Part shown: piece by piece, positions 3,545-64,000 of the stretch
How positions within the stretch are numbered: the first letter of the stretch is position 1
Layout of the letters: the number at the start of each line of letters is the position of its first letter
Assembly (NCBI RefSeq): GCF_006345805.1
Contig: NW_021833024.1
Location: forward strand, 186,001-250,000
Direction of reading: 5' to 3'
DNA length: 64,000 nucleotides
Source: Octopus sinensis
Lineage: Eukaryota
The notes under the pieces: generated by a model
Told to the model about the DNA's origin: nothing
The model's input: the letters and a program-made list of their open reading frames with translations, nothing else
The model's database searches: none
Position numbers and translations under genes: made by a program

Positions 3545-4178
3545 TTTTTTAATGGGAATTGTATTTCGTTAGTTTTGCATATTCGCCTCGGCCGACGAAC
3601 CGGGTCGACAAGCCGTGGAATTCAAAGCTCCCTTGGCAAAAGAGTCGGCACAGGTGACGTCCCAAACAAGCTGCTTGCCGGATTCAAAAGCAAAAAGTAT
3701 ACAGCCGTCTGGACGTTTTGCATCTTCAAGGACAAATCCCGTCGGTTCCAGAATTGAAGGAAAACCAGGTCTTTCCAGAGCTTTGTGAATTAGATTGTTA
3801 ATTATATTGTTAAATCGGCCGGCGCTCATTCGACAAGACAGAGGATGTAGCGTCAACTTTATCCCCACCACGACAGGGGTGAGGTCTGCAGACAGGGAGT
3901 CCAAGGAAGATACCCAAACGGAGTGAATCCCTATCGAGGACAGTGAAGGGAGTACATTCAGCCAGGAGTATGGCTGACAGGCGGAACGGAAACAAGCCAG
4001 TCTGTGTTGGTCGAGAGTGGTTCCAAGTCAGTTGAAGATCGGCGGCAAAGAATTTGATCCCAATCCCGCTGAGAAAAGACATCGGAAGGGACTTCAGAGA
4101 AATTGTGTTTCCAAAATGCGAGGGCCGAATCGATATCAGAGTCCAACGATGATTCAGTAGTTGTTCTAAATTGTTCAT
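3545..4178 (-). mobile_element. CRE-type non-LTR retrotransposon fragment (post-RT region, Zn knuckle, RLE)
   Basis: HPLSC..GRFNNIINNLIHKAL..SILEPTG..KRPDG..GKQLVWDVTCADS; frameshifted. Lies tail-to-tail with the + strand CRE tip. Confidence 0.9.
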
Positions 4179-6560: not shown

Positions 6561-7668
6561 CAAAACAATAGTAAGACATCATCCTGGCATCAATAAACAT
6601 CATTTGCGATTTAAAATTATAATTAAAGATGTCTCATTTTTAGTTAATTAACCAAGAATCGATGAAAGCGAATTTTACGTGACAACTGGCTAATTTTTTT
6701 CCTTACGACGACACCAACTATTTTTAATTTCGATGCCTGTTTTTTATGAGCCAGTATTCTTTTCCATTATCTACCCCATATTAACACGTTTTATGTACGC
6801 GGTCACATCGAGGATTATCAAAAATTCCTATAATTCTACACAATTATACCTCCTGAATACAAATAATTTGATATACAAATTTTAATCCAAATAGGACCAA
6901 TTTCCAGTAAAATTCTTAATGCCAAGGAATGATAGACATAATTTGTGAATACTACTGGATTGTTTTTATATCTGCATTCTTATTTCTATTATAAAGTGCA
7001 GTTTCATAAACCATTCCTAGATAAGGGTACTGTTCAGTTGTGCTGATTCCCCAATTTTGAATGATATATTCATAAGCGTAATACGGGTATCCGCTTTTAC
7101 ATCGACAATACTTACAGCAATCAAGCACGTTTTGTTCACTAAGACTAACTAACTTGCCATGCTTAAGCGCATATATACTTTCTATACTGGAAATCTGGAG
7201 AGTATTTATTTACAAACTGAGCTAAATATACAGCATGATCCACAATCAAGCTGATTTTTAACATTTGTGACTACATTTTTATCACATTTTAATATCCAAT
7301 TAACAGATTATAGTAAACCCCTGATTCTTCAGCTAATTACTACTAGGGCAATAGGCAGTTATAGAACATGTAAAAAAACGGCAATGGAACATGTCCTGCC
7401 TCGTTCTGTTGATGAAAGTTTAAGTCTCCTTTATCTGGGAACAAACTCAATATTAAACGCGTTGAAAGTAATTATCTTCTCTAGAGGCAAACAGGACAGC
7501 TTAATAACGATAAACCACCAATGGTAGTTGGTTAAACTGCAACCCCTGTAAGACAACTGAGAGGAACGAATCAGTGAGTATCGGAGTCTGCCTACGCTTA
7601 TTTTAAAGGGTTAGCATATAATTAATTCATAAAAACAGCAAATTAAATAATTTTAAAATTTTAAAAAA

Positions 7669-7740
7669 TGGAGATGCCGGGAATCGAACCCGGAACCTTC
7701 CGCATGCGAAGCAGACATCATACCACTAGACCACATCCCC
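7669..7740 (-). tRNA. trnA-CGC: tRNA-Ala (anticodon CGC)
   Basis: The reverse complement GGGGATGTGGTCTAGTGGTATGATGTCTGCTTCGCATGCGGAAGGTTCCGGGTTCGATTCCCGGCATCTCCA forms a full cloverleaf with A and B boxes. Confidence 0.97.
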
Positions 7741-7798
7741 ATTTTTAGGTATCAGGCTAAATTCTGTTTTCATCACATCTCCAACGATTCTTTTAGAC

Positions 7799-11599: not shown

Positions 11600-14200
11600 A
11601 CATTGAAAAATAGCGTTAGTAAAGTTATCTTGCTTGTGCCACCCTCTCCTGGATGCGTTTTGTTAATCGCTTCCTAATCCCTCTGTTCCTCGATAGTTCC
11701 CTCAGGTGCTCAAGATCGTCTGCTGATTTCAACCCTTTTTCAATCAAAGTTAGGTCTTGATGCAGAAGGGTTGCTAGAGTAATTCGTGGTCTTCCTAGGA
11801 AGGTCGTTTCCGGATGAGGAGCGTACTGGTGTTTCATTGCGAGATTTGGGGAGTTTTCCTGTCCATTCTTAGAATAAGCCCCATCTATTAATTCTTATTT
11901 CTTCGTCCAACGGATGTACATTTTAATTGAAGTAAAGATGTTTGTTTGATATGCGTTTTGACCAAAAAATTCTTAGGATGTATTTCTGCTGCATTCTATG
12001 GAAGGAATTCAGATTTTCCATTTCCTGCACTATGAGTGCCCAAGAGGAGGAGTTGTACAATAAGACTGGTTTACAAAAATATTGTATAGTTTGATTTTAA
12101 AGACGCAGAAATTTGTTTATCTCTAACCATACGTTATTTTATCTGTTAAGCGCAAAAGTTGTTTCGAATACTCTGGATTTCTGACTTCCGAGCTGGATAA
12201 ATAGTTAAGCGGAGGATGCAATCTTCCTCGAGTAGTGGCGTTAATATTTGTATCATCTTAACTCTACTGATTGAGTCAAATGCTTTAGATAGGTTGATTC
12301 CCATTATGTGGTACTCCTCTTTATATTCTTGGCACGAAGCACACATCCATTTGTGGCTATAAACAGCATCAGAAGTTGATCTTCCAGAGACAAACCCATT
12401 TTGGCTAGGTCAGATAAATTCACGTAGTGGGCCTTTAATTCTCTCCAGAGCAATTAGTGATAAAATTTTACGCAGTGAGTTGAGTAGTATGATTGATCTT
12501 AAGCTGCTTAGCTTTCCTTTTTCCTTCCCGCGTTATGTAAGGGGATTAACTTTTCGATTACAATGTTAATTCTGGAGTGTTCTTCAAAAGTTTTGTTCAA
12601 AATGTAAGTAATAAGTTTTTGGAGCTCTTCAGGAGCATATTTCATGAGCTCTGCATTAAATTTATCTGACCTGGAGCTTTTGAGTTGTTTAGTCTGATCA
12701 CAGATTTTTTAACTTCAGTTAAAGTAATTTCTTGAGATAGTTTTCTGAGGGCTCCATCAAAAGGATAAAGCGTTTCTTCGTTTTCAAAATTGAAATATTT
12801 TTCAAAGTGGTCGGCTATAGTGTCTGTGCGTTTCTGGTTGTTGTAAATGGTTCTTCCGAGTTCATCATGAACTGTTAGATTTTCAGATTTCTTCTTTCGC
12901 GCTAGCATCTTTACAGATGCAAATATTTTCGCTTCGTTTTTGTACTTTCCCACTCATTTGCAAGGCTTTGTAGCTCTGTTTCGTAATTTTTCTGACATTT
13001 TTTCTTGATTTCTTGCATGATTGTGTTTTTTTGGATTTTGAACTCAGCTGCTTTCACTTGGTTGTGGGTGTTTATGTATTTGATACGTAGATTCTTTTTT
13101 AAATGAGAAAGGTAATCTATATGCGGGTCATGTATTCCTTTGAAGGATTTGGGAATTGTCCCAATCGTATGTTTAGTCACTGATTTTATTTTGTTTGCGA
13201 GTTTATTCCATATACTTCCAGCAGGTAAATTGAGATTGATCGATTCTATGGGTTGTGATATTTTAGCTGAGTAGTTATTTCTATAGACAGGATTGTTTCT
13301 CAAGAGTTCGACTGCAAATCTGGCTTCTCAGTGTCTGTTTTTGACTCTGTTAATCAAAAATCTTCCCGTTAGGAGAAGTTTGATTACCAATAGTTTATAA
13401 TCACTCAATGTTAGCGTTCCTACATATGTTCTGGCGTCATGAAGTAGAGCTTTCTATGATTGTCGGCACAGTATGTAGTCAATTCGGTTATATATTTTGA
13501 TTGAATGTCCATCTGAGTTTCTGCGCTCTCCAGTCCATGTCGTGATATGCCTTGCAGGGTGTTAGAATGCTGTGTTGCAAATAAATAATTGTTTATTAAT
13601 CACAAAGTTGGCCATAATTGCCCCAGAAATGTTCCTCAGACCTCTTCCATGGGTACCTATGAAGCTCAGTTCTTTAATTCCTTTTCCGATCTTCGCGTTC
13701 CAATCTCTACTTATGTAAAGTTGATAGCTCGTGTATATTTCCATAAGGGTCTTACATAGTGAACTGTAAAAGTCATCCAGTTCCGTTCGGTTTTTAGAGA
13801 CTTTTGGAGAAGTATGCGCATATACATTTATAATTGTAATTGTCGATTTAGATCCAGTTTCCAATTGAATTACGCAGATTCTGTCATTCACTTTCCATAT
13901 TCTTTTTATATATTCTCGAAGTCTCATAGTGGTGACAGTTGAGGGAAGCAAGATAAGCTCATGGTCAGCATTTTATTCGTTAAGTCCTTCTTTGACTTTG
14001 GTCTCTTGCAGGCAGAGATAGTGATGTTGTATCGTGTCAGATCCTGGCAGAGTGACCTCCTTTTGACCGATGCTAGCGTGAACAGAGAGTTTGAAAAGGG
14101 TGAAAAAGACATTAGTGCAATTTGAGATGCGTCATCAACCTCAACCGAAAAAAGGCATGTGGTGGCTTAGCAGCCTGAACAGCTCGCAAATTGACTTATC
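11600..14200 (-). mobile_element. Decayed near-full-length RTE LINE (APE + RT)
   Basis: APE motifs ITIINVYA, DWNAKIG, GRGLRN; RT motifs RPIILLNS, KAFDSISR; C-terminal GRPRITL. Many stops and frameshifts. Confidence 0.92.
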
Positions 14201-14919
14201 GTCGTCATCAACGTTACTGAAGTATTAAAATATCTTTTTTCCGATCAGAAAAATAATTGTTGTCCAGCACAACAAACCAGATTTTGTTGGCAAAGAATAG
14301 GCAGATAAAAATTTAGAGGTAAGTCGTTTGCAGACAGGGAAAGTGACCTTCTCGCAAACGCATGTGTGATGATTTCTATGTCTATTTAATTTATATTTTT
14401 TCAAACATATATTTTCTGACCCTTATTATATGTGACCGTCCCCTGGACGTTCCGACAACGTCTGATTAACTTTTTTATTATGATCAATCTCTCAATTTTA
14501 TAGTTACTGTACTTAAAGTCTAGATCGTCAGTGGTTTTATTTCTTTGCATGAAAAGATACTTTGTCACAAATTTGCCTTCCTTCTCATCTCTGTTTCAAA
14601 ATCTTTGTTCAGTTAGGTTTTTTCATAACATGCAGGCTCCGCAAATTGATTGGAAAAAGAGGCGGAAGAATTGAGTGTGAAAGAGCCGAAATAAGAATTT
14701 CTACTTATTCAAACTATTTAGCTATTCAAATATATTAACCTATTAACAAAGCAATAAAATTCCTCATAAAAACCAATAATATATCGCTAAAATAAAAACA
14801 CTCAATAAACTTGACAATAAAAATGGTTTCTATTTCAATGCAGTTGGCATAGAGAAAAACAAAAATTAAAACAACCGATTTATTAAGAAAAAAAGTCGAT
14901 ATCGATTAACGTAAAAGCA

Positions 14920-14974
14920 AAAGACAATTCGTGAAAATGACAATTTTTGTGTCAAAGTCAGTCAACAGGCCTTT
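14920..14974 (-). promoter_or_regulatory. Candidate SECIS element (atypical UUGA core)
   Basis: Minus strand AAAGGC-CUGU-UGAC-UGACUUUGACAC-AAAAA-UUGUCAUUUUCA-CGAA-UU-GUCUUU: helix I, UGA/GA core, 12-nt helix II and apical As, 17 nt after the selenoprotein stop. Folded by eye. Confidence 0.55.
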
Positions 14975-14991
14975 ATACTAATACGATGAAA

Positions 14992-15287
14992 CTAATTATT
15001 GCAAACTTCCCGAATGGACTCAACAATCTATTTATGATTAAGAAAAGTCTGATACCACGTTGAATTCGGGAAATTTACCGCTTGCTAGTTTTGAGTGTAT
15101 CAGTTTGCCGTCTATCAGCACCTCAAAAGAGCTTCGTTCTCCTTTTGAAATATCAATCTGGAGATCGGGAAATGCTCCTCTGAGTTGATCGGCCAACTTC
15201 TTGGCCTTAGAGAGGTACCCTCAGGAGGTACTAAATGTATGAAAGATATTATTCACACCAATAAAATATAGAAAGCTTATGACTCAT
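14992..15287 (-). CDS. SELENOW2/MIEN1: Rdx-family selenoprotein (SelW2/MIEN1-like), 78 aa, Sec at UGA 15221-15223
   Basis: Introns 15231-15258 and 15028-15058 give MSHKLSIFYCTSUGYLSKAKKLADQLRGAFPDLQIDISKGERSSFEVLIDGKLIHSKLASGKFPEFNIVESIREVCNN*, with CxxU-GY and FEV..G.LIHSKL..G.FP motifs. Confidence 0.9.
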
Positions 15288-15574
15288 TGACACAGAAAAA
15301 CAGCGTGATATTATTTTATTCATAATTTTTTAAAAAAATGTACAATTAATAGATAATTTATTGAAATAATGTTTTTATTTAAATCTAAAAATATTAAAAA
15401 AATATTAACAATCAATTTTGTTTTGTTTGATTAAAAATTATACTTATAAGAAACCTGTTTTTAAGAAACTTCTAAACCATAAATATAATTTTAAATATTA
15501 ATTAAATTATAGAAATAATTTTTAAATTAAATGCACTTAAATAAATATACTTTGTTTAGGTTATACCACTTGAA

Positions 15575-21059: not shown

Positions 21060-22156
21060 CAGTAAACCTCTCGAATCCGCCGATTTTGGGACCGACCAAA
21101 AAATCGGCGGATTCGAGAAATCGGCGGATTCGATAGGCAATTTAAATAATATTTTATAGTTGAAATATGAACTTACAATATAGATTAAGTATTTCTTTTT
21201 ATATACAAATGACTGAATACATAAAATTATTTATATTCAAAAAAATCAGAAATTTTATTTTTTAATTGATTTTCTTAACATTTCCCCAATTCGCATAATA
21301 TTTCATGATCATCTATATCTGCATTTACCTGAGAAGCATAAGTTTTAATAATCTCTAGAGCTCTGAAGGCTTCTGAGAGATCAACTTTTTTTTCATTTGA
21401 TTCCTCTTCAATAATTGTTTCCTAAGTATAATTATTAAATAAATCACTAACTGATTGAACTTTTTTTGACTGTAATGTACCAGCTTGTTCAGATTGTTTA
21501 AAAATTCGATTAGCTCTTCATTTTCAGTATATCCGTAATCAACAAATTCACTATAAGATATTGGATCGTCAATTTGAAATTTCTTTATTATTTCTTCATT
21601 TGAAATTTGATGAGATGGACATTGATCTATTACAAGTAGAATTTTTCTTTTTTTCTTTGCAAGTTCACAATCAAAATCACTGAGCCACTTGTTAAAAATT
21701 TCACGGTTCATCCATGCCTTATTGGAATGGGTGTAGTAAATATTTTTCCAATGTTGAAAATTTTAAAACCCCTTGGACTTTTGAATCTTCCTATCATCAC
21801 AGGCCTTCTTTTATCGGAACCAGAACAATTTGCGCATAAGAGTAACGAAAATCGATCCTTCGACAACTTTATTCCAGGCCGTGATTTGGTGCACACACTT
21901 TTGGAAGGAATCGCCTTGTAAAAAACACCAGTTTCATCTGCATTATAAAACATTGTCCAATCATATTGTTCAATTTTTAAACTCATTGTTCATTAAAATC
22001 AGTAATAGATTTTTCATCATGATTTACTGATCCACTGTCTCCGTGAAATTTTCTTAACTTGATACCATTTCGTAATTTAACTTTTCTAGCCACCCACGAC
22101 TTGCGGATTCGAGAAGCGGCGGATTCGAGAAGCAGCGGATTCGAGAGGTTTCACTG
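21060..22156 (-). mobile_element. Internally deleted Tigger/pogo element
   Basis: TIRs CAGTAAACCTCTCGAATCCGC, TA flanks, repeated GCGGATTCGAG; remnants YNADETG and LVIDQCPSH. Confidence 0.93.
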
Positions 22157-22439
22157 TATTTATTTTTAGAAACGAATAATAAAATTTTTGATTTTACTTC
22201 TAAGATGGGAGTACATGGGCCAAAATATGATTTTAAAATAAGGACTGAGATATAATTGAATAATAACAGTTTAGGTTCGAATTTTGAAAGATTGTGCGAC
22301 GAATCTGTCGTTGAAGGTACACATATTTGAATCCCCATATGAAGAAAAGGGTAAAGTAAAAAATATAATTTCTAATAACAGATTAATGGTTAGTTATCTT
22401 TCCTAGACTTTACTGGACCCTTTTATAATAAATTATTTT

Positions 22440-23400
22440 TGTTGTTAATTGAAGGTCAAACTATGTAGGTCACGCTGTCAACAACGAAGGTCGCTCGGTC
22501 GCCAGCGTGGTATAATCGCCAGAGTTGGGCAGGACATATTATTCTTTGATAAATGGGTTGTAACTTCTATTTGGAGAGAAAAAAAGAGTTTCATGTTACT
22601 GAACTCTAAATCATGTGAGTATACAGTAGCATTATCAAGTAGAATTAGACTTTGAAAAATCATTTTTTTGTTCAATTCTATAAGCCATTTTGAGAAATAA
22701 GCATATATGATCCTCGCTTTTTAATTTGATTTGTATTCCACTTGTAAATTATTAATTAAATTTCTTCTTCCTTTAAAGCAGGGCGGATTTTTAGCTTTTC
22801 CAATAAAAAATGGATCAAGTTTTTCTCCCATCATACTAACCCAAAACATAACAGTTGCTCGTTCTTTTATCGGTTTAATAGATAAATTCTTGCCCAAATC
22901 AACAACTAATGTTCTGATGTACAAAAGTTTAAAAAACAATCCAGTTTCGTGCAAATTAAGAAAATATTTTTTGAACAATATTGTTCCGATTTTCTATTGG
23001 GCTTTCTGTAAAATTTTCAATCACAGAGGTTGCAACAAATTGATTTTCCCCACATAAAGCACGAGAAGCAATGCAATATCGAGCTTTAAATTTCTCAAGC
23101 CATCCATTTGATGCCTGAAATCCTTGAATATTACAAACTTTCGCCATTTTTAGAGGCATGGACTTCAAAAGATATTCATTGATTGTAAATCCAAATGATC
23201 ATTTTTTAGCGAACCATTCAAATTGATCTCTGTCGAATGGCTGAGATTTGGGCAAGTAAATTTTCTTCTTTTTTTGCCCATCTTAAAAAGTAAATATTTA
23301 TTCAGAATTTTGTTTATGCAGCCCAGAGAAACATTAAAATTAAGGGATAAATCACGCTGTGTATAATGTCTATTTTTTATTATAAAATTCGATCATTTCC
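22440..23400 (-). mobile_element. Decayed Tigger/pogo transposase
   Basis: FQASNGWLEKFKARY, NLHETGLF, KERATV, LLDNA; TIRs not identified. Confidence 0.85.
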
Positions 23401-23757
23401 TTCTTTCAACAAATGACAGACGTTTTCAATTTTGGACCATGCTAACGACTTCAGGACGTGTAATTTATTTATTTTAAGAATTTTAATATACAGATGTACT
23501 GAATCTAAACAGTTCGTTGACATGAATCCGTCCATCCGTGCACTGAACGTGGGCAATAAGAGGTTGAGGTTGATCGAATAAAACACTAAAAAAACGAAAA
23601 CGGAAACTGAATAACTATTAATTATCCAGATTTACAAATATTAAATTTAATATTTTTATGTTTATAGTGAACACCAAAATATTTATATAAATGATATCAT
23701 GCATTTTTAAAAGTGGTATTCATTTTATAATTAATATATTAATGAGAATTACTAATA

Positions 23758-24914
23758 CAGTTTACCCTCTATTGCTCGCCAATTCTATTGCTCGCCATTT
23801 CTATAACTCGCCACTTTTTTGGAAAAAATGCCATTTTTACTAAGGAAATTCCATTGCTCGCCAAATTCTCTTACTCGCCACGTTTTATTAAAAAATTAAA
23901 ATTTATTATTAAAAAAAATAATTTTTTCAAATATTTATACCGCGTGTTTTTTTTGTAAGATGAGGAAGTGCTCAAGATTATCTTATGATCAAAAAAGAGA
24001 AATTATAAATTATTTTATTGATAATTCTTCTCTAAGTCTAAGGCAGTTTCAGAAATTTTTCGTCGCGTTTCAAAAATCAATTTCGAGACGTGCAATTAAC
24101 GATCTTAAATTGAACAAACAAAGATTCTTGGAATTAATCCAATTTATGGGAGAAGTTCTCGTTTTTCGAAACTTAGATATTCAGCAATTGATTCTGAAAT
24201 CATTGCCTGGATAGATTACATGGAATCTATTGGAGTTTGCCTCAATGATGAGATAATTTTGTCGAAAGCAACTGAAATTGCTGCGTTAAACGGTCTCTTC
24301 GAATTTAAAGCCAGTAAAGGATGGCTTGAAAAGTTCAAAAAAAGGCACAATGTAAAACTAAGAATTTTTCATGGTGAATTGGGATATACTGCGGATGAGT
24401 TCAAAGACCAAATCGAAGACTTAAAAAAAATTATCTCTTCTAAAATAAATGAATATGGTTCAGAAAATGTTTATAATGCCGACGAAACCGGCGTATTTTA
24501 CAAGACCATTCCATCAAAAAGTGAAAATGCAATTTTAGACAGTTCAATTACTGAAGATTGTGAAAGAAACAACTGTATTACACATCGAGATGCGATAAAA
24601 TGTATTTCGGACCTCAAAAAATATTTTTCACATGACGATAATTTTGACGTGAATATGCGAGAAAGTTTATTAAAAATGCAAAAAAATATAGAGAAAAGAT
24701 CATACAAAAAAACTATAAATGATTACTTTACTTAAAATTTTGGTTTTTTAAATAAATGTTTCGGCTATTTATTTAAATGTTTAGATAGTTAAAAATTATA
24801 GAAATTTTTTGTTGATAGAAAATAGGATACTGATTATTTCTCTTACTCGCCAAATTCTCTTAGTCGCCAATTTTGGCTTGGTCCCAAAAATGGCGAGCAA
24901 TAGAGGGAAGACTG
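23758..24914 (+). mobile_element. Internally deleted Tigger/pogo element (second family)
   Basis: TIR CAGTTTACCCTCTATTGCTCGCCA and its inverse, TA flanks, CTCGCCA subterminal repeats; FKASKGWLEKFKKRH, YNADETG. Confidence 0.93.
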
Positions 24915-26912: not shown

Positions 26913-28585
26913 ATGCCGCGTGAAATCATTACTCTCCAACTTGGTCAATGTGGTAACCAAAGTACTTTTCCTTCTAATAAACAGTCGGCTTTGAATTTTG
27001 GAAACAGCTTTGTGCAGAACACGGAATTAGCCCAGGTTAATTAGCATTTCTAGTTAATATTCAAGACGGCATTCTCCAGGAACATGCAATCGATGGAAAT
27101 GACAGAAAAGATGTCTTTTTCTACCAGGCTGACGACGACCACTACATTCCACGTGTCGTTCTTGTGGATTTGGAGCCTCGAGTCATCAGTACCATCAGAA
27201 ATTCGAAATATGCTCATCTTTATAACCCAGAAAACATTTTTGTGTCCAAAGATGGAGGCGGGGCTGGCAATATTTGGGCTTCTGGATATGTCCACGTTTT
27301 TTTTATTTTGATATTGACAGGCCTCTAAGCTCTACGAGGAGATTTTTGATATCATAGATAGAGAGGCAGACGGTTCTGATAGTCTTGAGGTTAATTTATA
27401 ATTTATTTTATTATTAAATTTATATTTAATTAATTATATATATTATTTATTTTAATAAATAAATAAAATAAATTTAAAATTGTTGATGATGTGGTGATAG
27501 GGGTTTACAATATGTCATTCCATTGCTGGTGGGACAGGATCTGGAATGGGATCTTATATCTTAGAAAAACTAAATGATAGGCAATTATTCGATCAAATAT
27601 ATATATAGATATCCCAAAAAACTAGTACAGACATATTCTGTCTTTCCTAACCTCCAAGAAATGTCAGATGTCGTAGTACAGCCTTACAACTCAATCCTCA
27701 CTATGAAAAGACTAACAGAAAATGCAGATTCAGTAGTTGTATTGGACAATACTGCCCTACATCGAATTGCCTCTGAACGTTTACATGTAGAGAATCCCTC
27801 CTTCTCCCAAATAAACCAAATTGTACTCTCCTGATGACATTGAAGGTCTCAACTGTAATGTCAGTGTCGACCTCAACACTTCGTTATCCTGGCTTTATGA
27901 ATAATGATTTGGTCGGGCTTATAGCCTCGTTAGTGCCCACTCCTCGGCTTCATTTCCTTATGACGGGATACACTCCAATATCCACGGAATCTCAAGTTTA
28001 GTGTTTATTTATGTTAGATTTCCTCTGTGATGAAAACTTCGGTTTTGGATGTAATGAGACGACTGTTGCAGCCTAAAAATATGATGGTCAGTACTTCGCA
28101 GAGAAGGAACTCCCAACATTGTTATATTTCTATTCTCAATATAATCCAAGGGGAAGTTGAGCCTTCTCAGGTATGAGTGACCATTTGACATTGAAGGTGC
28201 ATAAAAGTCTGCAAAAAATCCGTGAACGAAAGTTGGCGAGATTTATTTCTTGGGGACCTGCGAGTATCCAAGTGACCCTTTCGAAGAAGTCTCCGTATGT
28301 TCAGAGCAGTAACAGAGTGTCTGGACTAATGTTGGCCAATCATACGAGCATTTCTACGGTAGTGGTGTAGGTTGATGATAGCTGTTTGAGACTACATTGA
28401 AGCAGTATGACAGACTTAAGAAGAGGGAGGCGTTTTTGGATCAGTACAAACGAGAGGAGATGTTCAGGGATAATCTCGACGAGTTTGATAGTTCCCGGCA
28501 AGTAGTGCAGGAGCTTATTGATGAATATGTTGCAGCTACTAGGCCAGATTATCCCGATTGGTGTTCTGGGAATGTACTTCAGTAG
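26913..28585 (+). CDS. TUBG1: Gamma-tubulin, 9 introns (23, 30, 25, 111, 28, 23, 22, 26, 23 nt)
   Basis: [57 protein letters not shown]; intron 27581-27608 is GC-AG. Confidence 0.99.
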
Positions 28586-29237: not shown

Positions 29238-30918
29238 CAGTAAAACCTCTCGAATCCGCCGAATTTTTTCAAGAATACAAAATTTCCTATGAGAAATTCC
29301 CGAATCCGTCAATTTCTCGAATCCGCCGCATTTTTAGAAATATATATTTTTTATTTTCTTAATTATTATTATTTTTTTTAAATTCAAAAACACTTTTACA
29401 CGAGACATTATCATTTAATTGTGTGTTTGGTCCTGTTAATTGTAATGAAACGTAATTGTACCAGATTGAAAAATTCCGAAAACAACAAATTATTAAATTT
29501 ATCGATCAAAATCCAGGGATTTCGCTTACAAGAGTGTCCGCTATCTTTTCCGAAAGATTCAGACGCGTTATTTCAAGACGATCCTTAAACGACCTTAGGA
29601 GCAGAAGGAATGTATCTGCCTTTCAATCCATATTTAAAGTTCAATGAAATTGATGAAGATACTATGTCATGGATTGAAATGATGGAAACCAGAGGAGCAA
29701 TTCTTAATGATTCGATTATTCTTACAAAGGCTGAAGACTTTGCGAAGAAACGTCAAATAACTGAGTTTAAAGCCAGTCGTGGATGGCTTGAAAAATTTAA
29801 AAAAGACATGGGTTTAAATTCAAGAAACTTTATGGAGAATCTTCTACAGAGAATTTCTCAAATTCTGAATTTAATGATTTTCTCATTAATATAAGAGCAA
29901 AAATAAAATTATATGGTCGCGAAAATGTCTATAATACAGATGAGACAGGATTATTTTATAAAGCTCTTCCATATAAAAACATTTGCAAGATCAAGAGATA
30001 TGGGCATAAATTATTGAAGGATCGAATATCGATAATGTTCTGTTCAAAACTAACACCATTCATAATTGGAAAATTCAAAAATCCTAGATGCTTTAAAAAT
30101 TTATCGAAGTTTTGTGACCTATCATAATTCAAAAAAAGCATGGATGGATTCTAAGTTATTCAATACATTTTTGTTCGAATGGGATATCAGATTGGCTAAA
30201 GAAAAACGCAAAATACTACTCGTAATTGACCAATGTCCATCTCACAAGATTTTTACAAATTTACAGCAAATTGAAATAATGTTTTTGCCGGCAAATGCTA
30301 CGTGTTTATTACAGCCGATGGACCAAGGAGTCATTAATATGCTTTAATTTATACCTATCAAGCATGGACAAAGTTAAATAGTACAACAATAATAAATTGT
30401 TTTCGACATGCTAAATGGACCGAAGATTTTATTGAAGAAATATATGACGAGTCTTTGCTTGAAACTTATCAGCAATTCGTGTCAAAACTACAAATAAATG
30501 ATCCAATTCCTGAGGAAGAGTATCTTCTATACGAGTATACAGAGAATGAAGAGATCCTGGACAATTTGGATGAAAATGATGATGAGGACATTGATTTTGG
30601 AGAAAAAAAGAATGAACAAGTCGTTTTAGACCACGATGCTTTGAATGCTCTCCATACATTGAGGAAGTACTTCAAACAAAAGGATGAAACTAATTTAAAT
30701 GTCTTCAATCACCTTAATGATGTTAGTAGAAACATCAAAATAAATATTAAAACTAAAATAACTGACTATATTTATAGAAATTAATGTCTTCATTTTTTAA
30801 TTAGTCTATAAAATTAAAAAAATGCATTTTATTAACAAATAAAAATATTCAAATTTGTCTCTCGAATCCGCCAAATTTGCGACCTGGGAAATTACGGCGG
30901 ATTCGAGAGGTTTTACTG
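29238..30918 (+). mobile_element. Tigger/pogo element with both TIRs, frameshifted transposase
   Basis: TIR CAGTAAAACCTCTCGAATCCGCC, TA flanks; FKASRGWLEKFKK, YNTDETG, LVIDQCPSH, LQPMDQG. Same family as 21060-22156. Confidence 0.95.
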
Positions 30919-34989: not shown

Positions 34990-35465
34990 TTTTTTTAATT
35001 AATTTTTATTCAACAAATAATTTAGTTAGTATTTTTTAAGGACAAATATAAAAAGAAACTAATTAGCTAATAAAGCCATCCATCCGAAGTGGACCCCGCC
35101 AACATAATTGACGTTGCGTTGCCTCTCACGATAGCAACGGAGATCAACTGGAGAAGCCACCGGGTCTCACGTGTGTCGTGGCTTTTTAATGTGACTAAGC
35201 GTCCAAGCTTCTTTAGGAAGTGAAGCGATTTCCCACTTATTCCTCCAGTTGTCTCGACCACAATCGGACAGAACACGAATTGGTCTCGCAGCGCTTCATA
35301 TTTTCTCTTCTTTGCCCTCATCGTTGTTTCCGCGCCATACAGTGTGTCCACTGCGCTCCCGGCAATGTCGGACGGGTAGAGTGTGTCCACACAGGTTGCG
35401 TCCCAGACTAGGGGTTTCCCCTCTTCAAATAGGAAAATTGTGATCCCATCAGGACGTTTGCGTCC
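34990..35465 (-). mobile_element. 5'-truncated CRE-type retrotransposon with A-rich tail
   Basis: KRPDG, FCPIVVETTGG, WLLQLISVAIVRGN; 3' junction poly(A) abuts AGACACTT. Confidence 0.92.
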
Positions 35466-35791
35466 CTGTCTTGGCGTATTAAAACTTCATCTCCATGTTC
35501 AATTTCGTCGTACTTCAATCTTCAATTTTTTCGCCTGATTTCACAATATTTTCGAGGGCAATTCTTCGTTTTTCTTCCCCTTTCAAATTCTTTCAAAGCG
35601 AAGTAAAATAGCCTTCAAAATCTAATAGTGCTTGCAATTTTGTTTTTTCATATTTTTTTAGAAAGATCCAAATTAAAAAAAATTCCAATGGTCTTTGCCT
35701 TCTTGTATCGTGGATAGCATAGTTGTAATCACGAACAATGTCTCTTATCAAATGAATATAACATCAAAAATTGCCTCTCGATACATTAGAG

Positions 35792-37012: not shown

Positions 37013-37608
37013 ATTTTTTTTTTTTTTTAAACCTATGAATTTAATGAAAATAATAACTGTAAACGAAAACAGAGAGAAAAGAGAGTTAACAAGAGGACTT
37101 CCCCGCCTCGTAGATGGAGAAACAGTTTCCACGTACAATGGCAAGGGAAATCCTCTGAAGGAGCCATCCACACTCACGCGTGTCGTTTCTCTTGCGAGAA
37201 ATCAGACGACCCAGCTTTTTGAGGAAAATGAGTGACCTGTCACCGATTACGCCAGAGGTCTCCACGGCGATCGGGGTAAACAGATAGCGTTCCGAGAGAT
37301 TGGTGTACTTTGAAATCTTTAATTCTTCTGCTCTGCGAGAAGCAGAGCCAGCTGCGACAGCTGAAGGAGGAAGATTTAGTTCAGAAAAGTATCTGAGCAA
37401 GTTGCATCCCATATCAGCGATTTTCCGAACTCGAATGGGAAGGTGGATAGACCGTCAGGCCTCTTTCCGTCTCCCCTAGCAAGCCCAACTGGTTCGAGAA
37501 TTGATGGGATTCCGGCAGCTTTGAGCTCCCTCAGGACGACGTCATTTAGGGCAGCGTGGCGTGGGGCACGCCCAGCACTGCGTCTGCAGGAAAGAGGGTG
37601 TAATTTTA
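37013..37608 (-). mobile_element. 5'-truncated CRE-type retrotransposon (Zn knuckle + RLE) with poly(A)
   Basis: [49 protein letters not shown]; long T-run at 37016-37029. Confidence 0.93.
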
Positions 37609-37816
37609 ACAAAATCGATAAAGAAATTCATTAAATTTTATTATTTGATATCAATTTTATTTATTTATTTTTTTTAAAAAAGAAATTAAAGATAGCTAAG
37701 TCAATTTTATTTGTTTTCAATCTAATTTGTTCAGACATTTCTTCCTAATGAAGCATTTTGGAAAACATTTACGAATTTGTAAAGGAGGAATAATAAACAC
37801 GGAAAGCATTTCAGTA

Positions 37817-37911: not shown

Positions 37912-38252
37912 CAGTAAGGAGGAATAATAAACAATAGCCCCTAATTATTTTGCATCAAAGTATGCAATTCAGGGCTTCTCGTAGGTTTTCAGGTTGTCTG
38001 CTAATTATTAAAAACTCCTCTCAATGTAAATTCGGAAAAACAGATTCTTAAAATTTTTACAAAATTGTCAGATTTGTTAAAACAAGTAGTTTTTATGCCA
38101 AAATTTAATTTTTATTAATCAAAATATTGGAAAATCTATTTAATTATTTTTTTACATATTTATGATTATATTTTCATAACATATTATCCTAAATAAAATA
38201 AAATAAATAACGAAAGAACTTGTTGTTGTTTATATTTTTGCTGGCTACAAAT

Positions 38253-40634
38253 ATGGATTCTGAAACATTGAATTTAAAAAATGCCGAAATGTACATAACC
38301 CGTGCCTACTCACACTGCTACAAGGACACAACTGAAGGACTCTATTCTGCTTTTTCCTGTTTTTTAGAAGCAGTCAAATTAGTTCCAAAGAATGCTCAAA
38401 TCTTCTTAAAATTTGGAGATTTTTTCCAATATTTCATGAACGATTCAAACCGTGCTTATTCTTGCTATGAAAGAGCCTACATTCTCGATTCCTTAGTACC
38501 AGAAATTGCCATTGCTTACCACGGAAGTAGTTTCGGTCTACTAAACAAAGATTCAAGTCAAAAATACCTTCAAAATTTCATTCGAAGTGAGTTTACTCCT
38601 GCAATGATCCCCGCACTCCGCAGACTGGCAATATTTTACATGTGTAATGGCGAATACTCCCAGTCTCTGCGGATTTGTGACCTAGCAATCGACATTGACA
38701 AAGATTGCTTCATTTTTGTAATGTTGAGAACAGAACTGATTCGACTCAGTGGAATGAGTCTGACTTTTAACCACAAATCTTTTCTCGAAAAGTCTCAGGA
38801 CATTCCCCAATGGAGGCTTTTAGTAAAACTGATTATTACAATCTCTTCCCTTAAAAGCGGGGACTTTGAAGAGATCGCCTCAACCCTTGAAGAATTGCTG
38901 AATTCAACCAACGAAGAATCGGAAGATTTGACGATTTTTAAAGTCCTTTATGCTGAAATTATGTGCTATTTGGGAGATGATTTGTTATCAGAAAATCGTT
39001 TTTTGGAAGCTTTTGACATTTATACAATTGCTTTCGACAGTCTCCGTGGTTTTTTATCCCAGGAAAGCAGAGATCAGAAAATAGTTCTGTTTTTGTTTGG
39101 TTATTCTGCGTTTCGTCTTTGTCAGTTATGTTTCCATCCCGATTCTCCTCCTGGCCATGAAACCCTTCAGACATACGTCAAGTTGAGTATTTGGGCCTTT
39201 GGTCATTTGGCCATCATGACCAGGCTGTGTTCTGCGTTTTATAACTGTGCTTTGGCTGCCTCATTTCTTTGGAGAATTAATGGAAATGAGAGTGCCCGTG
39301 ATTTGTCCGTGGGTTGTGCAGTCTCCTCTGTTTGTGAGAGTGGTGGGAGTTCTGATTCGTGGCTTCTTTTGGGGACTGTTGCTTACTTTTTCAAAGATTA
39401 CGTTCTCGCAGAAAAATCATTTTTCAAATCAATTGATGCTTCTCAACACAACGAACGTGCATTTGTCAATTTGGCTGTACTTTATTACACATGTGAGGAT
39501 TATGAGCACTCCTTTCGTGTTATTGAAATGTCCAAGAATGTTTCATTTTCTCGGGATAGTGAAATTATGTTAAAAATTCTTCTAATGAAAGCGGGCACTT
39601 CAGATCATTGGGAAATTTTTGATGGAATTGACAAGCATTTGATGGTAGCTATTAATGGCTTCAATCCATCAATTTTTACCTATCGATTTTTTGCTGTGCA
39701 CGTGGCGACAAAATTGTGTTCGATATCCTGTTTTCAGAATGGAAAAAAATATATTCCGTCCTGTAATATCACTAAGGATTCATCTCCAGAGGATCAAGTC
39801 ACTAAGGCCATTGAAGGTCTTTTTTATTATTTGGAGGCTCGACCCAACGATGCAATGGCTCAGTCTCTACTTGGGTCGTTCATGAATTTATTGGATTTCA
39901 AAACATCAGATGATCGGCATAAAATTGCTTTACAGCTCATCTCAGAAAAGAACGACGTATTTTCTCTCCTCCCCGAACAACTATCCAGCCTTGATTGTGC
40001 GGTTATACTTAACGCAATGAGAAGCCTTGTTGATGTCAGAATGACTGGAGAATATATTTCTTCTTTGGTCTCATATCCGGGCACTAATCAATGCGAATTA
40101 TTAAACGGATTTATTGGCTTGTACAACATTGGGGAGTACACTTCTGCACTGAATATATTAAATTTACTTCACCGTGATCCTTTCAGTTTTCGACTGCAGG
40201 GAATTACTATTTTTAAATGTGGGAGACCAAATGATGCCCTTGACTATTTGCTGAAGGTCAAATGTCCAGAATTAGTTTATGATATTTTCTATTTGTCCTT
40301 TCTACTGAAAAATCAAGACTCTGCATATCAGGCATTCAAAATCATTTCTGCCAAAAAAAGTCTTGAAGCTCTGTTTGTGAAAAGTTTATGGAAGTTCATG
40401 TCAGGAGACAGGTCCCCCATTTGTAATCTGGGTAATATACAACTTCGTTCTTTTTATAAAATGGGGAAGAATGATTTTATTCAGTATTATCTGGCACTAT
40501 TATCCAATGAAGTGAGAATTGCAGACCTACCCATTTTTCGACGTATGGTTGGTCAGTGTGAAACTCCACCGATGTGTTTGCCTCCACAGCTCTTGCAAGC
40601 TTTTCAGAAACATTATTACTTGTCTCCGCCTTAG
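38253..40634 (+). CDS. TTC37: TPR protein TTC37/SKI3 (SKI complex), intronless, N-terminally short
   Basis: 2.4-kb ORF with TPRs. CFLEAVKLVP..FLKFGDFF..DSNRAYSCYERAYILD and HNERAFVNLAVLY resemble SKI3/TTC37 middle TPRs. Confidence 0.75.
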   Translation: MDSETLNLKNAEMYITRAYSHCYKDTTEGLYSAFSCFLEAVKLVPKNAQIFLKFGDFFQYFMNDSNRAYSCYERAYILDSLVPEIAIAYHGSSFGLLNKDSSQKYLQNFIRSEFTPAMIPALRRLAIFYMCNGEYSQSLRICDLAIDIDKDCFIFVMLRTELIRLSGMSLTFNHKSFLEKSQDIPQWRLLVKLIITISSLKSGDFEEIASTLEELLNSTNEESEDLTIFKVLYAEIMCYLGDDLLSENRFLEAFDIYTIAFDSLRGFLSQESRDQKIVLFLFGYSAFRLCQLCFHPDSPPGHETLQTYVKLSIWAFGHLAIMTRLCSAFYNCALAASFLWRINGNESARDLSVGCAVSSVCESGGSSDSWLLLGTVAYFFKDYVLAEKSFFKSIDASQHNERAFVNLAVLYYTCEDYEHSFRVIEMSKNVSFSRDSEIMLKILLMKAGTSDHWEIFDGIDKHLMVAINGFNPSIFTYRFFAVHVATKLCSISCFQNGKKYIPSCNITKDSSPEDQVTKAIEGLFYYLEARPNDAMAQSLLGSFMNLLDFKTSDDRHKIALQLISEKNDVFSLLPEQLSSLDCAVILNAMRSLVDVRMTGEYISSLVSYPGTNQCELLNGFIGLYNIGEYTSALNILNLLHRDPFSFRLQGITIFKCGRPNDALDYLLKVKCPELVYDIFYLSFLLKNQDSAYQAFKIISAKKSLEALFVKSLWKFMSGDRSPICNLGNIQLRSFYKMGKNDFIQYYLALLSNEVRIADLPIFRRMVGQCETPPMCLPPQLLQAFQKHYYLSPP

Positions 40635-40699: not shown

Positions 40700-41022
40700 G
40701 GCGTATTTATTACGATAATAAATACGCAATACAATTAGCTAATTAATTGTAATTTACTAGAAGTTAATAAAGCCATCCATCCGAAGTGGACCCCGCCAAC
40801 ATAATTGACGTTGCGTTGCCTCTTACGATAGCAACGGAGATCAACTGGAGAAGCCACCGGGTCTCACGTGTGTCGTGGCTTTTTAATGTGGCTAAGCGTC
40901 CAAGCTTCTTTAGGAAGTGAAGCGATTTCCCACTTATTCCTCCAGTTGTCTCGACCACAATCGGACAGAACACGAATCGGTCTCGCAGCGCTTCATATTT
41001 TCTCTTCTTCGCCCTCATCGTT
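40700..41022 (-). mobile_element. 5'-truncated CRE-type retrotransposon
   Basis: Nearly identical to 35067-35320. Confidence 0.92.
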
Positions 41023-41087
41023 TTTTCTTTATTTAGTTAGTATTATGTTTCTGATATATATGTCTTTTAATATCGAAATAGAGTATT

Positions 41088-49903: not shown

Positions 49904-50770
49904 CAGTGGGGCAAATAAGTAATGGAACGCCCCTCTTTTTTTAAATTTGACGTGTTTTATAATGATAACTATTTTTGATAGCTTTTATAACTTAACCAAA
50001 ATGCACCATACCTACCATAAAGCACAGGAAGGAAGTATCATGCTATGGGGCTGTTTTTCATCAACAGGCGTCGGTGAATTATTTGTAATAGATGGAATAA
50101 TGAATTCGCTCAAATATTGCGAAATCCTGGAAGAATGTCTGTTTTGTTTATTATTATTATTATTTAAGCCAAACAAAATCACCGTCTTAACCATTAACTA
50201 ACACGTTCAGGTGATTCCGACACTTTCCAACAGTTCGGTCCCTAAATTAAATTTAACACAACAATGGACATTCCAGCATGACAACGACCCACTACATAGA
50301 TCAAAAATGGTTACTAAGAAACAAAATAAATGTTTTGGAATGGCCAAGTCAATCACCAGACCTCAATCCAATCGAACATTGATGGAAAATTTTAAAAATG
50401 AAAGTTGGTTTAAGGAAACTGAAAAACATTCACGAATTAAAAACAATTTGCTATAAAGAATGAGAATGTCAGAAGCTTATTTATCCTTCCCAAAAAAGAT
50501 TGGAAGTACTATTAGCAAAAGGGAATGGAACTAAATATTAATTTGATTTCGTTCCATGACTTTTTTCCTTCATTAAATTAACTTTTACAAAAAAATCGCT
50601 AATTATTGCAAAACAAATAACTCGAGTTAGTATAGTTTTTTGAATGATTAATCTAAAATGTCTTATATTTCTAATTTCTTTTTTAAACTACATTATTTAA
50701 TGTTATTTTCGAGGAGAATTATCAAATTAAGTAAAAACATGAAGCGTTCCATGACATTTTTGCTTCACTG
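49904..50770 (+). mobile_element. Internally deleted Tc1-like element
   Basis: TIRs CAGTGGGGCAAATAAGTAATGGAACGC / imperfect inverse, TA flanks; [30 protein letters not shown]. Confidence 0.92.
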
Positions 50771-56793: not shown

Positions 56794-57910
56794 ATGTAGA
56801 ATAACCTCCTTTTGCCGAATAGATCTCCCAACACCTTTTTTTCATTGACTCAACTAATTTTTCAAGTGTTTTTGATGGAATAGAATTTCAAATATCTAAT
56901 AGATTTTCCTTCAGTGCCTGAATGTTCTCATTTTTTCTTTGCCTAATTTGAACCTTCATATAAGCCCACAAATGCTCTATCGGATTTAAATCCGGAGATT
57001 GCGAAGGCCATTTTAATTTTTTAATATTTTTTTCGCGAAAATATTGAATAATCATTTTTGATGTATGGCAGGGAGCGTTGTCTTGTTGAAAAATATAGTC
57101 AACAATCCCCATTTTTTGTACAGAAAATGGCAAATTATTGGTCAAAATAGATTGATATTTTGCAGAATTAAGCGTTTTGTCTATAAATACCAAATCGCCT
57201 ACCCCATGATAGGAAAAACAACCCCACACCATGACTTTCCCTAATTTTTTATTACATCATAATTTACCTTTTCCAAATTTGACAGTTGGAGTAATATTTT
57301 CGAATTTATTCATTTCAAATTTTTTTCTATACACAATTTTTCTTTTTTGGATCGGTAATAATTCAAAAATACATTCAGCAGAAAAGATTATTGATCTAAA
57401 ATCATGGTCTGAAATTTGAAGAAATTTTTGGAATCTGGAAACCATGTGTTTTTTGTTAGAAGTGGTTTTTTCTTTGCAATTCTTCCGAAAATTCCATTTT
57501 TATTTAAATTTCGTATTATGGTTCGAGACGAGACACGTGTTCCAGAAAACTTTTCTATTTCATTAGAGAGTTCAGAAGCAGTTAAAGATGAATTTTCCTC
57601 TGATGTGCGTACCAAATGATTAATTTGCACATTATTCAAAATTGATAGTCTTCCAAAACCATGTTGGCGGTCATATGATCCAGTTTTATTGTATTTCTTG
57701 ATAAAATTTACGACTGTTGAATATGGAACACCGGTTTCTTTAGAAATTTTAATATATGACATATTTAAGTCGTATAGCGCAATTATTTTCCCTTTCATAA
57801 ACGAATCGAGAGTATTATATCTAAAAATATTTTTTATTAAGATCAATCTCTAAATACTAGCATAATTTGACGGTTTAAATTTTATAACCAATTTTTGTCA
57901 CTAACCTAAT
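56794..57910 (-). mobile_element. Tc1-like transposon, frameshifted transposase
   Basis: HTH region, [44 protein letters not shown]; first catalytic D reads A (FSAE); TIRs degenerate. Confidence 0.92.
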
Positions 57911-60984: not shown

Positions 60985-62600
60985 TTATTCAGTAAAATCA
61001 TGTAAAACAAACAATTTTTTAAATTCATCAGTGTCCACTTTTTCATCCTCCTCTGAGAGAATACAGCCCCTCCAATCTGCCCGTTCCCCACATTCCATCA
61101 CCTCACACACCACCTGCCTATCCACTCACCCAAAACAAACAACCTCCCAAAATTGACAGGAAAACTCTTACTGTTGGCCAGTGATATAAAATACCCTCCT
61201 CTCCCGTCCACTTCCATCCAGAAATACGTCTGTCCGACACCCACCATCTACATAACTAAAAAATGACCCCGACCTGATTCAGGGGGGTCTCCGAAGACAT
61301 TTTAGAGACCTTCAGACCCAGAGAACGGGCGTGGGCATACAAACAGTCCTCCACTTTGTCTGCACAGTCAATTGGAACACTCACAACCTAAAAATACAAA
61401 AAATAAATCAAACTTGCAGTTGGGCGTGCCGACTTTTGAAATTCCGTTCAAAAACAACATAAACACGAGAAAACTTCAAATAAATATCACGAAGAGCTTT
61501 TTTATAACTAGAAATGAAAAAATAAAGAAATACCACTCCATATCCTGTCTAACTGAGTCATCCAGACACACACAAGACTGCACGTGGTTTATTGGGATTA
61601 TAAGCACGTGCTGACTGTCGATCCCCCCCTTCGCCAATGCCAAATAAGACTACACGAATAAATAGACCGACTACATGTTCGGAAACACTAATAATCAGAC
61701 TTTTTTCCACATCTGAAGAGCCAAGACAAAACCAACATTCAGAACTTTCCGATTTGAATCGTTTTTGGTTATCGTAGACCATTTTTTGCTGTCTTTTCTC
61801 AGTTTTGTCAAAGAAGAACTGTGTTTCCTCCCTTTTGAAGGACTGATTGGATGTCTCAACGTAAGGGTTATCCACACATCTAATATTAGGTGCCTTCAAC
61901 TCCTCAAAAGTGCAGTATTTCGTGGGTTTTAGAGAAAAAGCATACAGCCACTGGAAATTAGACAGAAAACTACTTTATTGTCCACATTACCCACATTAGC
62001 GATAGAAATAAAACGAGAAACAATTTCTTTCCCATTTTTATTGGTCCATCTGAATGGGGATTGTTCGTAGAAGACTGGTTTGGAGGATGTGAAGTGATAT
62101 CTTGGTCTGACAAGGCTAGGAGTGGTCCCTGTCTTATCTGGCCAGTCAAGGGAGAGGAAAATGTCCACGTCGACTGAGGGGATGTCGACTGGGGACATTC
62201 CTTGGTAGGCCACCACCAATCCGTTGGGTAGTTCGAGTAACTCAGAGTCACCTGGGTTTGTGATTTGTGTATTTATACTGATAAATTTAATTTTGGGGTA
62301 ATTGTTGTGGTCAGTCGGTGTCTGGGGAGTGAAAATATATGTTGGGATGTTGACTGGATTATATAAATGGGAGTGATACTTTGGGAAGGATCAAATCCAC
62401 TCCAATTGTATTCTGTGGCAAAAAAGTCGCCCACGCAGAAAAGTAGCTATGATAAATTAGGCAAATAAAACGTCAAAATTGCCTGCCTTTTTTTGAATTG
62501 TTTCAATTCGGCTAAAAAGTCGTTCAAATAAACCGTCGACGTTTCCAGATATTAGACTGATTGGTAAGAGATTTTAAAACTACATTCGCAACGTCGACAT
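60985..62600 (-). CDS. CWF19L1: CWF19-like protein 1 (spliceosome disassembly/debranching-associated)
   Basis: IQKKAGNFDLLFCVGDFF, VRPRYHF, CWFCLGSSDVEKSLIISV, YLALAKGG, HVLIIPINH; many mini-introns. Confidence 0.95.
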
Positions 62601-62897: not shown

Positions 62898-63315
62898 TTT
62901 TTTTTTCTTTTTTTTTTTTTTCAATCAAAAAATCTATAAATTGACAAATAGTTATTAACTAACTAAATTCCGGCATCGTAAATGGAAACACAGTTTCCAC
63001 GTACTATGGCCAAGGAAATCCTTTCGAAAAGCCACTTGGACTCGCGTGGGTCTCCCCGTTTATGGAGATCATGCGGCCAAGCTTTTTTAGAAAGGAAAGA
63101 GACTTTTCGCCGATGACGCCGGAAGTCTCGACGGCGATGGGAGTGAACAGATACCGTTCAGAGAGCTCCTTGTACTTTCCAATCTTCATCTTCTCGGTTT
63201 TGGCGAGAGACTGAGCCAGGCTCGACAGCTGAAGAAGGAAGGTTGAGCTCCGAGAAAGTGTCTGAACACGTCGCATCCCATAACAGAGACTTGCCGAACT
63301 CAAACGGGAAAGTCG
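62898..63315 (-). mobile_element. 5'-truncated CRE-type retrotransposon with poly(A) and 12-bp TSD
   Basis: KYKELSERYLFTPIAVETSG, RISLAIVRGN; TSD ATGTAAGTGTCT at 62886-62897 and 63316-63327. Confidence 0.93.
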
Positions 63316-63539
63316 ATGTAAGTGTCTGTCATAAAGGAATATATAACCCTTATTTTTGATTGTTTCTTTTTTTGTGGTTTCTTTGTAGTCGAAAGTTAAG
63401 TTTTTGAAAAAATTTTTCGACAGGCTTATTTAAATTAGGGCATGTTTATTCGCTTTTTCTCAAATAGATGTTCATGTCTAAACAATATTTTGATTATTTA
63501 TTAATTTGAATCAATAGATTATGTAATAATTATGTAATA

Positions 63540-64000
63540 AATGAAGTGTTGATATCAAATAAAGTATATCAAATAAATTCAGAGAAGAGATTGATTTGAG
63601 AAATCAATTGAGGAAGCCCGCTGCCTGTATGGAAAGCGAGTTCCCTCGGAGTATGGCTATTCCGATCCTTTGTCTTAGCCATACTCCTTCACGAGGATCA
63701 TTTTTCTTTGTGGCGAGCATTCTTCCGAGTTCGCGCAAGAACTCGGCAGTCGCTGGGCCAACAGCTCCTGATGACTCAGCCGCAACAGGGGTGAATCTGT
63801 AGCGGTCCCCGAGGAAGGAATATTTTTTGGTTTTAAGGTTTTCCGCGATTGAGGCAGCTGCTCCAGGTGTCTGAACCGATTTAAGGAGATTCGTGCTTGA
63901 GTAAGTATCGACGCAAGTTGCGTCCCAGACCAAAGATCGTCCGGAGTTGAAAGGGAAAAGAGTCATCCCGTCAGGTCTCTTTCCATCACCTCGATCGAGA
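63540..64000 (-). mobile_element. CRE-type retrotransposon RLE region (another subfamily), runs off the window
   Basis: [45 protein letters not shown]; this part is an intact frame. Confidence 0.92.

Follow-up and report, generated by a model that had tools for sequence, protein, structure and literature searches.

Sec-type members of the Rdx family, in which a UGA codon is decoded as selenocysteine (Sec), include SelW (also SELENOW or SelW1) and forms of SelW2 (Rdx12, or MIEN1). Planarians, schistosomes, Lottia, and Trichoplax have Sec-type SelW1 and SelW2 genes, and such genes are prone to loss in the most parasitic flatworms; invertebrates usually have the Sec form of SelW2, and flatworms, Lottia, and Trichoplax are among those that do (PMC3828610). 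A selenoprotein of the SelW2 type would be a known kind of gene, and one to be expected in a marine invertebrate.

The core of a type I SECIS element has the consensus UGAN/KGAW (PMC3753652). The base before this quartet is usually A but is G in nematodes, and the nematode trxr-1 element is a case of a lineage-specific change at this base in animals whose selenoproteome is reduced (PMC4114682). The loose filters of SECISearch allow at most 2 consecutive unpaired positions in helix II and require that the apical loop continue for 6-23 nt after the AA motif (PMC1802603).

Here we describe an unannotated gene on the minus strand of a 64-kb stretch of DNA (we call this whole stretch the window). 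It encodes a relative of MIEN1 and has a TGA codon within its reading frame. From the evidence below, it is probably a functional SelW2/Rdx12-type selenoprotein gene that is decoded through an atypical SECIS, the hairpin that follows its stop codon.

A three-exon gene with an in-frame TGA

The gene has three exons (Table 1), and its 240-nt coding sequence, by direct reading, is MSHKLSIFYCTS-TGA-GYLSKAKKLADQLRGAFPDLQIDISKGERSSFEVLIDGKLIHSKLASGKFPEFNVIVESIREVCNN. Once two 28-nt introns are spliced out, the predicted product has 79 amino acids, MSHKLSIFYCTS-U-GYLSK...SIREVCNN (where U is Sec). At the default length, the list of open reading frames has just two fragments at this locus, of 24 and 52 amino acids, so the gene is invisible to that list, as the original prediction had stated. 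That prediction also proposed introns of 28 and 31 nt and a protein of 78 amino acids. Intron 1 is indeed a 28-nt GT..AG intron, but for intron 2 a length of 28 nt is the better model; it gives 79 amino acids and retains the C-terminal helix.

In this AT-rich sequence, stop codons can always be removed by splicing. When we allowed GT..AG mini-introns freely and used dynamic programming to find the best spliced open reading frame, an open frame crossed the whole window, over tens of kb, and we rejected this approach. The gene model therefore rests on the gain in homology with each splice, which we measured against the Rdx family of Pfam (PF10262, with a cut-off of 22.6 bits). The unspliced frame scores 51.5 bits. 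Removing intron 1 raises this to 64.3 bits, and if intron 2 is then retained, there is a stop after 6 codons. Removing the 28-nt intron 2 as well gives 69.2 bits (E = 3.6e-19) and covers positions 2-74 of the 74 in the profile. With the 31-nt form of intron 2, the score is 63.8 bits, the match covers positions 2-66 of 74, and the C-terminal helix is lost. We prefer the 28-nt form because of its higher score and because the match reaches the end of the profile. The part of exon 2 after the TGA is also recognized by itself (41.1 bits, E = 2e-10), which is more than chance would give. The protein belongs to the Rdx family, as first proposed. Furthermore, the Cys of the CxxU motif is encoded by a split codon, TG|T, that is formed only once intron 1 is out. 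We expect that both 28-nt introns are spliced in vivo.

Splicing around the UGA was considered and rejected: the next acceptor (CCTGAG|), or a donor 2 nt downstream, leads to a frame shift and then to early stops or non-homologous sequence. There is an alternative start, an in-frame ATG 12 codons upstream (15321-15323, minus strand) with A at -3, which would add MNKIISRCFSVS. The downstream ATG (at 15287) places CxxU at residues 10-13, the very position that it has in mammalian SelW. The AATAAA sequence argues for a short 3' UTR, of about 130 nt if this putative signal is used. The locus is single copy within the window and lies outside any repeat; because it is single copy, we ruled out that the gene or the hairpin is a component of a repeat.

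The coding sequence also contains a stem-loop (GGCCAA GAAG UUGGCC, 15191-15206 on the minus strand) that begins 14 nt after the Sec UGA; its 6 bp pair perfectly around a loop of 4 nt. Sec-redefinition stem-loops of some vertebrate selenoprotein mRNAs have a similar placement. The stem-loop could be a coincidence of the codons for KAKKLA.

Table 1. Positions in the window of the parts of the predicted selenoprotein gene, of the SECIS-like hairpin, and of one gamma-tubulin intron
Feature	Position	Strand	Description
Exon 1, coding part (29 nt)	15259-15287	-	ATG...TATTG; MSHKLSIFY and the first two bases of the Cys codon
Intron 1	15231-15258	-	28 nt, GT..AG; within the 20-30-nt range of the gamma-tubulin gene
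Exon 2 (175 nt)	15056-15230	-	(C)TS-U-GYLSKAKKLADQLRGAFPDLQIDISKGERSSFEVLIDGKLIHSKLASGKFPEFNV
Predicted Sec codon, TGA, in frame	15221-15223	-	residue 13, CTSU
Intron 2	15028-15055	-	28 nt, GT..AG; alternative of 31 nt via donor GT at 15058
Exon 3, coding part (36 nt)	14992-15027	-	IVESIREVCNN and the stop codon TAG (14992-14994)
SECIS-like hairpin, type I shape, 55 nt	14920-14974	-	begins 17 nt after the TAG; folded with RNAfold
Hairpin helix I, 6 bp	within 14920-14974	-	AAAGGC/GUCUUU; internal loop CUGU / UU (4 nt / 2 nt)
Hairpin core		-	U-UGA-C / C-GA-A; putative non-Watson-Crick quartet
5' core UGA	14962-14964	-	preceded by U at 14965
3' core GA	14929-14930	-	C before, A after
Hairpin helix II	within 14920-14974	-	3 bp, CUU/UUU 3x3 loop, 5 bp
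Apical loop, 7 nt	14943-14949	-	CAAAAAU; AA motif 13 nt after the core
AATAAA polyadenylation signal (putative)	14879-14884	-	36 nt 3' of the hairpin
Gamma-tubulin GC-AG intron	27581-27608	+	28 nt

Similarity to MIEN1 and to SelW

Among proteins with solved structures, the best match is human MIEN1 (C17orf37; 2ljk; E = 5e-10, 42.8 bits), and the alignment is free of gaps from the first strand to the last helix. The CxxC or CxxU motif comes directly after the first beta strand in both proteins (LSIFY-C-T-S-U-GY opposite VVEY-C-E-P-C-GF), so that the TGA lies opposite the second Cys of CEPC, and exon 3 lies opposite the C-terminal helix of MIEN1 (LIEAIRRASN), again with no gap. The next matches are bacterial SelW-like proteins, followed by mouse SelW (2npb; E = 3.6e-4, 24.2 bits). 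These matches to solved Rdx structures (2ljk, 2obk, and 2npb) suggest that the protein has a thioredoxin-like fold.

With MIEN1/Rdx12, the protein shares the position of the CxxC/CxxU motif, a similar size, and the motif ...SKL.nG.FP..., but mammalian MIEN1 has Cys where this protein has the predicted Sec. This is unsurprising because invertebrates usually have the Sec type of SelW2. With SelW, the protein shares the fold family and the motif GKLIHSK, but the match to SelW1 covers only residues 5-61 and scores below the match to MIEN1, and the C-terminal part of the protein is MIEN1-like. Judging from these scores, the protein appears to be nearer to MIEN1/SelW2 than to SelW. The C-terminus had originally been described as nearer to SelW2/Rdx12 (MIEN1), and the alignments to SelW and MIEN1 support this.

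MIEN1 bears a C-terminal CaaX prenylation box. This protein does not: it ends with ...REVCNN-stop, while its relatives P0002, P0003, P0008, and P0012 end with CTML, CLLM, CSIM, and CSLM, respectively. The CaaX box, which several protist relatives also have, marks MIEN1 proper and not every SelW2 protein.

The same codon in database relatives

Word-indexed homologue searches gave no match for the spliced protein or for a neighbouring open reading frame of 804 codons, so that collection evidently lacks the proteins of this organism. We also scanned 1.84 billion representative proteins with the exon-2 peptide and found 19 relatives (E <= 1e-3), of which the best share about 50% identity with the peptide. 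The protein has about 40-54% identity to its nearest relatives in the databases. The residues that are invariant among these relatives are intact in this gene. Many of the 19 relatives are written with W at the Sec position or start just after it. We examined the DNA for five of the "W" relatives (P0002, P0003, P0004, P0008, and P0017), and in all five the codon is TGA. (W at the active site, as C-x-x-W-G-Y, is also found in P0009 and P0011.) Because the W codon is TGA, we consider the closest relatives to be CxxU selenoproteins that are mistranslated in public collections, and the W is the product of gene callers that use a code with TGA as Trp. Cys-type relatives also exist, as P0007 and P0018 carry CxxC.

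In the alignment, the TGA of the window is in the same column as the TGA of the homologues in six control loci (L001-L006). The original prediction had placed the UGA exactly where SelW has Sec, and both the second Cys of MIEN1's CEPC and the TGA codons of the relatives lie opposite it.

Mini-introns and the genetic code elsewhere in the window

A gamma-tubulin gene on the plus strand (26913 to about 28585) is complete, with 454 amino acids, and is 78-80% identical to animal orthologues. Its nine introns are 23, 30, 25, 111, 28 (GC-AG), 23, 22, 26, and 20 nt long, so eight of the nine are 20-30 nt. Because introns of 20-30 nt join the conserved exons of this gene, we accept mini-introns as real in this genome.

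Although the TGA triplet is common in the window, it does not occur in frame in the 454 codons of gamma-tubulin or in an open reading frame of 804 codons (38220-40634). This rules out UGA as a general sense codon. Several long open reading frames of the window terminate in TGA, and UGA elsewhere in the window is a stop codon. We also considered a ciliate-type code in which TAG is sense. This reading would extend the protein by 10 residues, up to the TGA inside the core of the hairpin. We ruled out such a code because gamma-tubulin and the 804-codon open reading frame both end in TAG and have no in-frame TAA or TAG, and because the relatives are animal.

The 804-codon open reading frame is on the plus strand and intronless, with weak matches to TPR. 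It has no relative at E <= 1e-5 in a collection of 5.8 billion proteins and looks lineage-specific and orphan-like. The window also contains many degraded mobile elements (12149-14166 on the minus strand, 21358-24735, 29589-30781 and 49923-50453 on the plus strand, and 56891-57849 on the minus strand). These include open reading frames for a LINE-like endonuclease and reverse transcriptase directly downstream of the selenoprotein gene, fragments of pogo/Tc5-type transposases, and Tc1/mariner copies. Another family of open reading frames has multiple copies, all on the minus strand (3572-4027, 35070-35486, 37089-37627, 40767-41036, 63007-63429, and 63607-63999), with the motifs ...GKRPDG...VWDATC.D... 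and ...RYLFTPIAVETSG...FLKKLGR.... This family is presumably part of a retroelement.

A SECIS-like hairpin after the stop codon

The original prediction described a SECIS-shaped hairpin 17 nt past the stop codon, in which U precedes the core and helix II is interrupted by a 3x3 pyrimidine loop; RNA folding gives the same structure. To see how rare such hairpins are, we used a descriptor that comprises NUGAN, an unpaired AA at a set distance, and NGAN, with a helix II of -4 kcal/mol or lower (in constrained folding) and a helix I of at least 5 bp. The thresholds of the descriptor were chosen with the candidate in view, so the chance probabilities that follow are indicative only. On both strands of the window (128 kb), the descriptor matches three sites, including this hairpin; dinucleotide shuffles have 1.7 matches per 128 kb. 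The corresponding chance rate per 130-nt stretch of shuffled sequence is 0.0017 and goes up to 0.007-0.017 if the settings are relaxed. Even at very relaxed settings, there are no other candidates in the 3' flank as far as 13900 (1.4 kb). The other matches at relaxed settings are in coding exons only: two are anchored on the Sec codon and one is at 15155 (core UUGA/AGAC).

As positive controls, the descriptor recovered the 3' UTR SECIS elements of three of the control loci (L001, L003, and L005) and the trxr-1 SECIS of C. elegans (using the sequence from PMC4114682). One or two SECIS elements, in the control loci L002 and L006, escaped the descriptor. The other two sites in the window are at 62450 and 41312, both on the plus strand. 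The site at 62450 has a fully canonical core (AUGAU...UGAA) and a 20-nt apical loop; it is probably a chance match because it lies opposite coding open reading frames of the minus strand (61561-62390).

Like a canonical type I SECIS, the hairpin lies in the (predicted) 3' UTR. The distance of 13 nt from the quartet to the AA and the 6-bp stem below the quartet are within loose criteria, which place the AA at 10-13 nt (PMC1802603). In other ways, the hairpin departs from the consensus. A canonical element has A or G before the UGA, while this one has U; and a canonical element has G or U (K) before the 3' GA, while this one has C. Helix II has three consecutive pyrimidine mismatches, and just 4-5 nt of the loop are left after the AA, so the hairpin fails both of the loose filters (PMC1802603). 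The energy of helix II is -4.2 kcal/mol, compared to -12.8 to -15.6 kcal/mol for the SECIS elements of the relatives, and the stability of the entire hairpin relative to shuffles is marginal (z = -1.6 to -1.8). Two of these departures, the C before the 3' GA and the apical loop of only 7 nt, go beyond those originally listed. Because of these additional departures and the failure of the loose filters, we refer to the hairpin as a candidate divergent SECIS.

Rfam, at permissive thresholds, gave no match to a SECIS family for either 801 nt or 111 nt around the hairpin. This negative result carries little weight, because Rfam did not find a SECIS in any of the six control loci with TGA-type relatives either.

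A parallel in structure is the trxr-1 SECIS of C. elegans. When folded in the same way, it has N-UGA-C followed by 4 bp and an internal loop of 3x3 pyrimidines, and its apical part contains AAA. As that element is validated, the 3x3 loop has a functional precedent. The nematode element differs at two bases: its quartet follows G instead of U, and its 3' GA follows U (a K base) instead of C. Also, the nematode element was validated experimentally, while this hairpin is a candidate.

Proposed decoding and alternative explanations

We propose that removal of the two 28-nt introns would yield an mRNA in which the ribosome decodes the UGA at codon 13 as selenocysteine. The protein would then have a thioredoxin-like fold with a CxxU redox motif where its first beta strand ends. 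The recoding would be directed by the hairpin at 14920-14974, within the short 3' UTR, and Sec insertion would presumably depend on SBP2 and eEFSec. The only tRNA gene in the 64-kb window is a tRNA-Ala(CGC) (7668-7741, minus strand); there is no tRNA-Sec in it.

Alternatively, this could be a dead or dying Rdx gene, formerly of the Cys or Sec type, whose UGA terminates translation after 12 residues, and the hairpin could be a chance stem-loop in AU-rich sequence. A dying gene would fit with a hairpin that misses several features of the consensus and the published filters (PMC3753652, PMC1802603), that is thermodynamically unremarkable, and that matches no SECIS family in Rfam. It would also fit with the tendency of parasitic lineages towards loss of SelW and smaller selenoproteomes (PMC3828610) and with the loss of Sec use altogether in some nematodes (PMC4114682). 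However, the start codon, both pairs of splice sites, the reading frame, the invariant residues, the stop codon, and the AATAAA are all intact. The sole defect would have fallen on exactly the codon that is TGA in the relatives, and a SECIS-shaped hairpin would be in the right place by chance only about 0.2-2% of the time. We therefore think that a dying gene is unlikely.

Two other explanations seem less plausible still. The gene might be a genuine selenoprotein gene whose SECIS is elsewhere, in a longer 3' UTR, in the coding region, or in a form that our descriptor cannot see. The descriptor did fail for one or two control loci, SECIS elements in coding regions can function (PMC1802603), and the GC-rich stem-loop shortly after the UGA might be considered. 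But the 3' flank down to 13900 has no other candidate, and the extra matches at relaxed settings are confined to coding exons; furthermore, the AATAAA favors a short UTR, and a LINE-like element lies downstream. This makes a SECIS at another location very unlikely. As for an error in sequencing or assembly, just one base separates TGA from TGT; the true codon could be TGT or TGC and the product an ordinary Cys-type MIEN1-like protein, made without recoding. Cys-type relatives are known (P0007, P0018, and mammalian MIEN1). Nevertheless, the error would have to strike precisely this one base, the TGA type prevails among the closest relatives, and the SECIS-shaped hairpin would become an unrelated coincidence. 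We consider such an error very improbable. A functional selenoprotein gene that uses the hairpin after its stop codon is the explanation that we favor.

The probable source of the sequence

The window has a G+C content of about 34%, is rich in fragments of LINE, pogo/Tc5, and Tc1/mariner elements, and has introns that are mostly 20-30 nt. The only animals for which introns of this size have been reported are dicyemids and myxobolid myxozoans (PMC6543705, PMC13644364). The median intron of dicyemids is 27 bp (PMC6543705); in D. japonicum, the GC content is 36.7% and repeats make up 49% of the genome (PMC6736024). The best named matches for the gamma-tubulin are from molluscs, a brachiopod, a nemertean, and annelids (78-79% identity), with cnidarians lower (75-76%), and there is no myxozoan among the best 120 matches. 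With lophotrochozoan gamma-tubulins on top and no myxozoan among those 120, a myxobolid host is less likely. The most likely source of the window, as its sequence suggests, is a dicyemid. In our literature search, we found no paper on the selenoproteins of dicyemids or myxozoans.

Implications

A practical consequence is that annotation pipelines miss this gene, as they routinely do with genes of its kind, and that the same codon in its relatives is rendered as Trp in public collections. If the gene is functional, then the few lineage-specific SECIS variants that are known gain another member, one whose core is unusual, which matters for tuning the tools that find SECIS elements and selenoproteins.

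We also considered whether the lineage, which is probably Dicyemida, might have a shifted SECIS consensus that is read by a co-evolved SBP2. The shifted consensus would have U before the quartet and C opposite its fourth position; helix II would contain a U-rich internal loop, and the apical loop would be minimal. This is a tentative suggestion, and we think it is rather doubtful. If true, it would be the second animal case, after nematodes, in which the SECIS of a genome-reduced parasite was remodelled throughout its lineage, and the failure of standard tools to see selenoproteins there would be explained. Regardless of whether the consensus has shifted, a functional gene would imply that Sec decoding has been retained in an animal whose genome ranks among the most reduced, with about 5,000 genes if the source is Dicyema.
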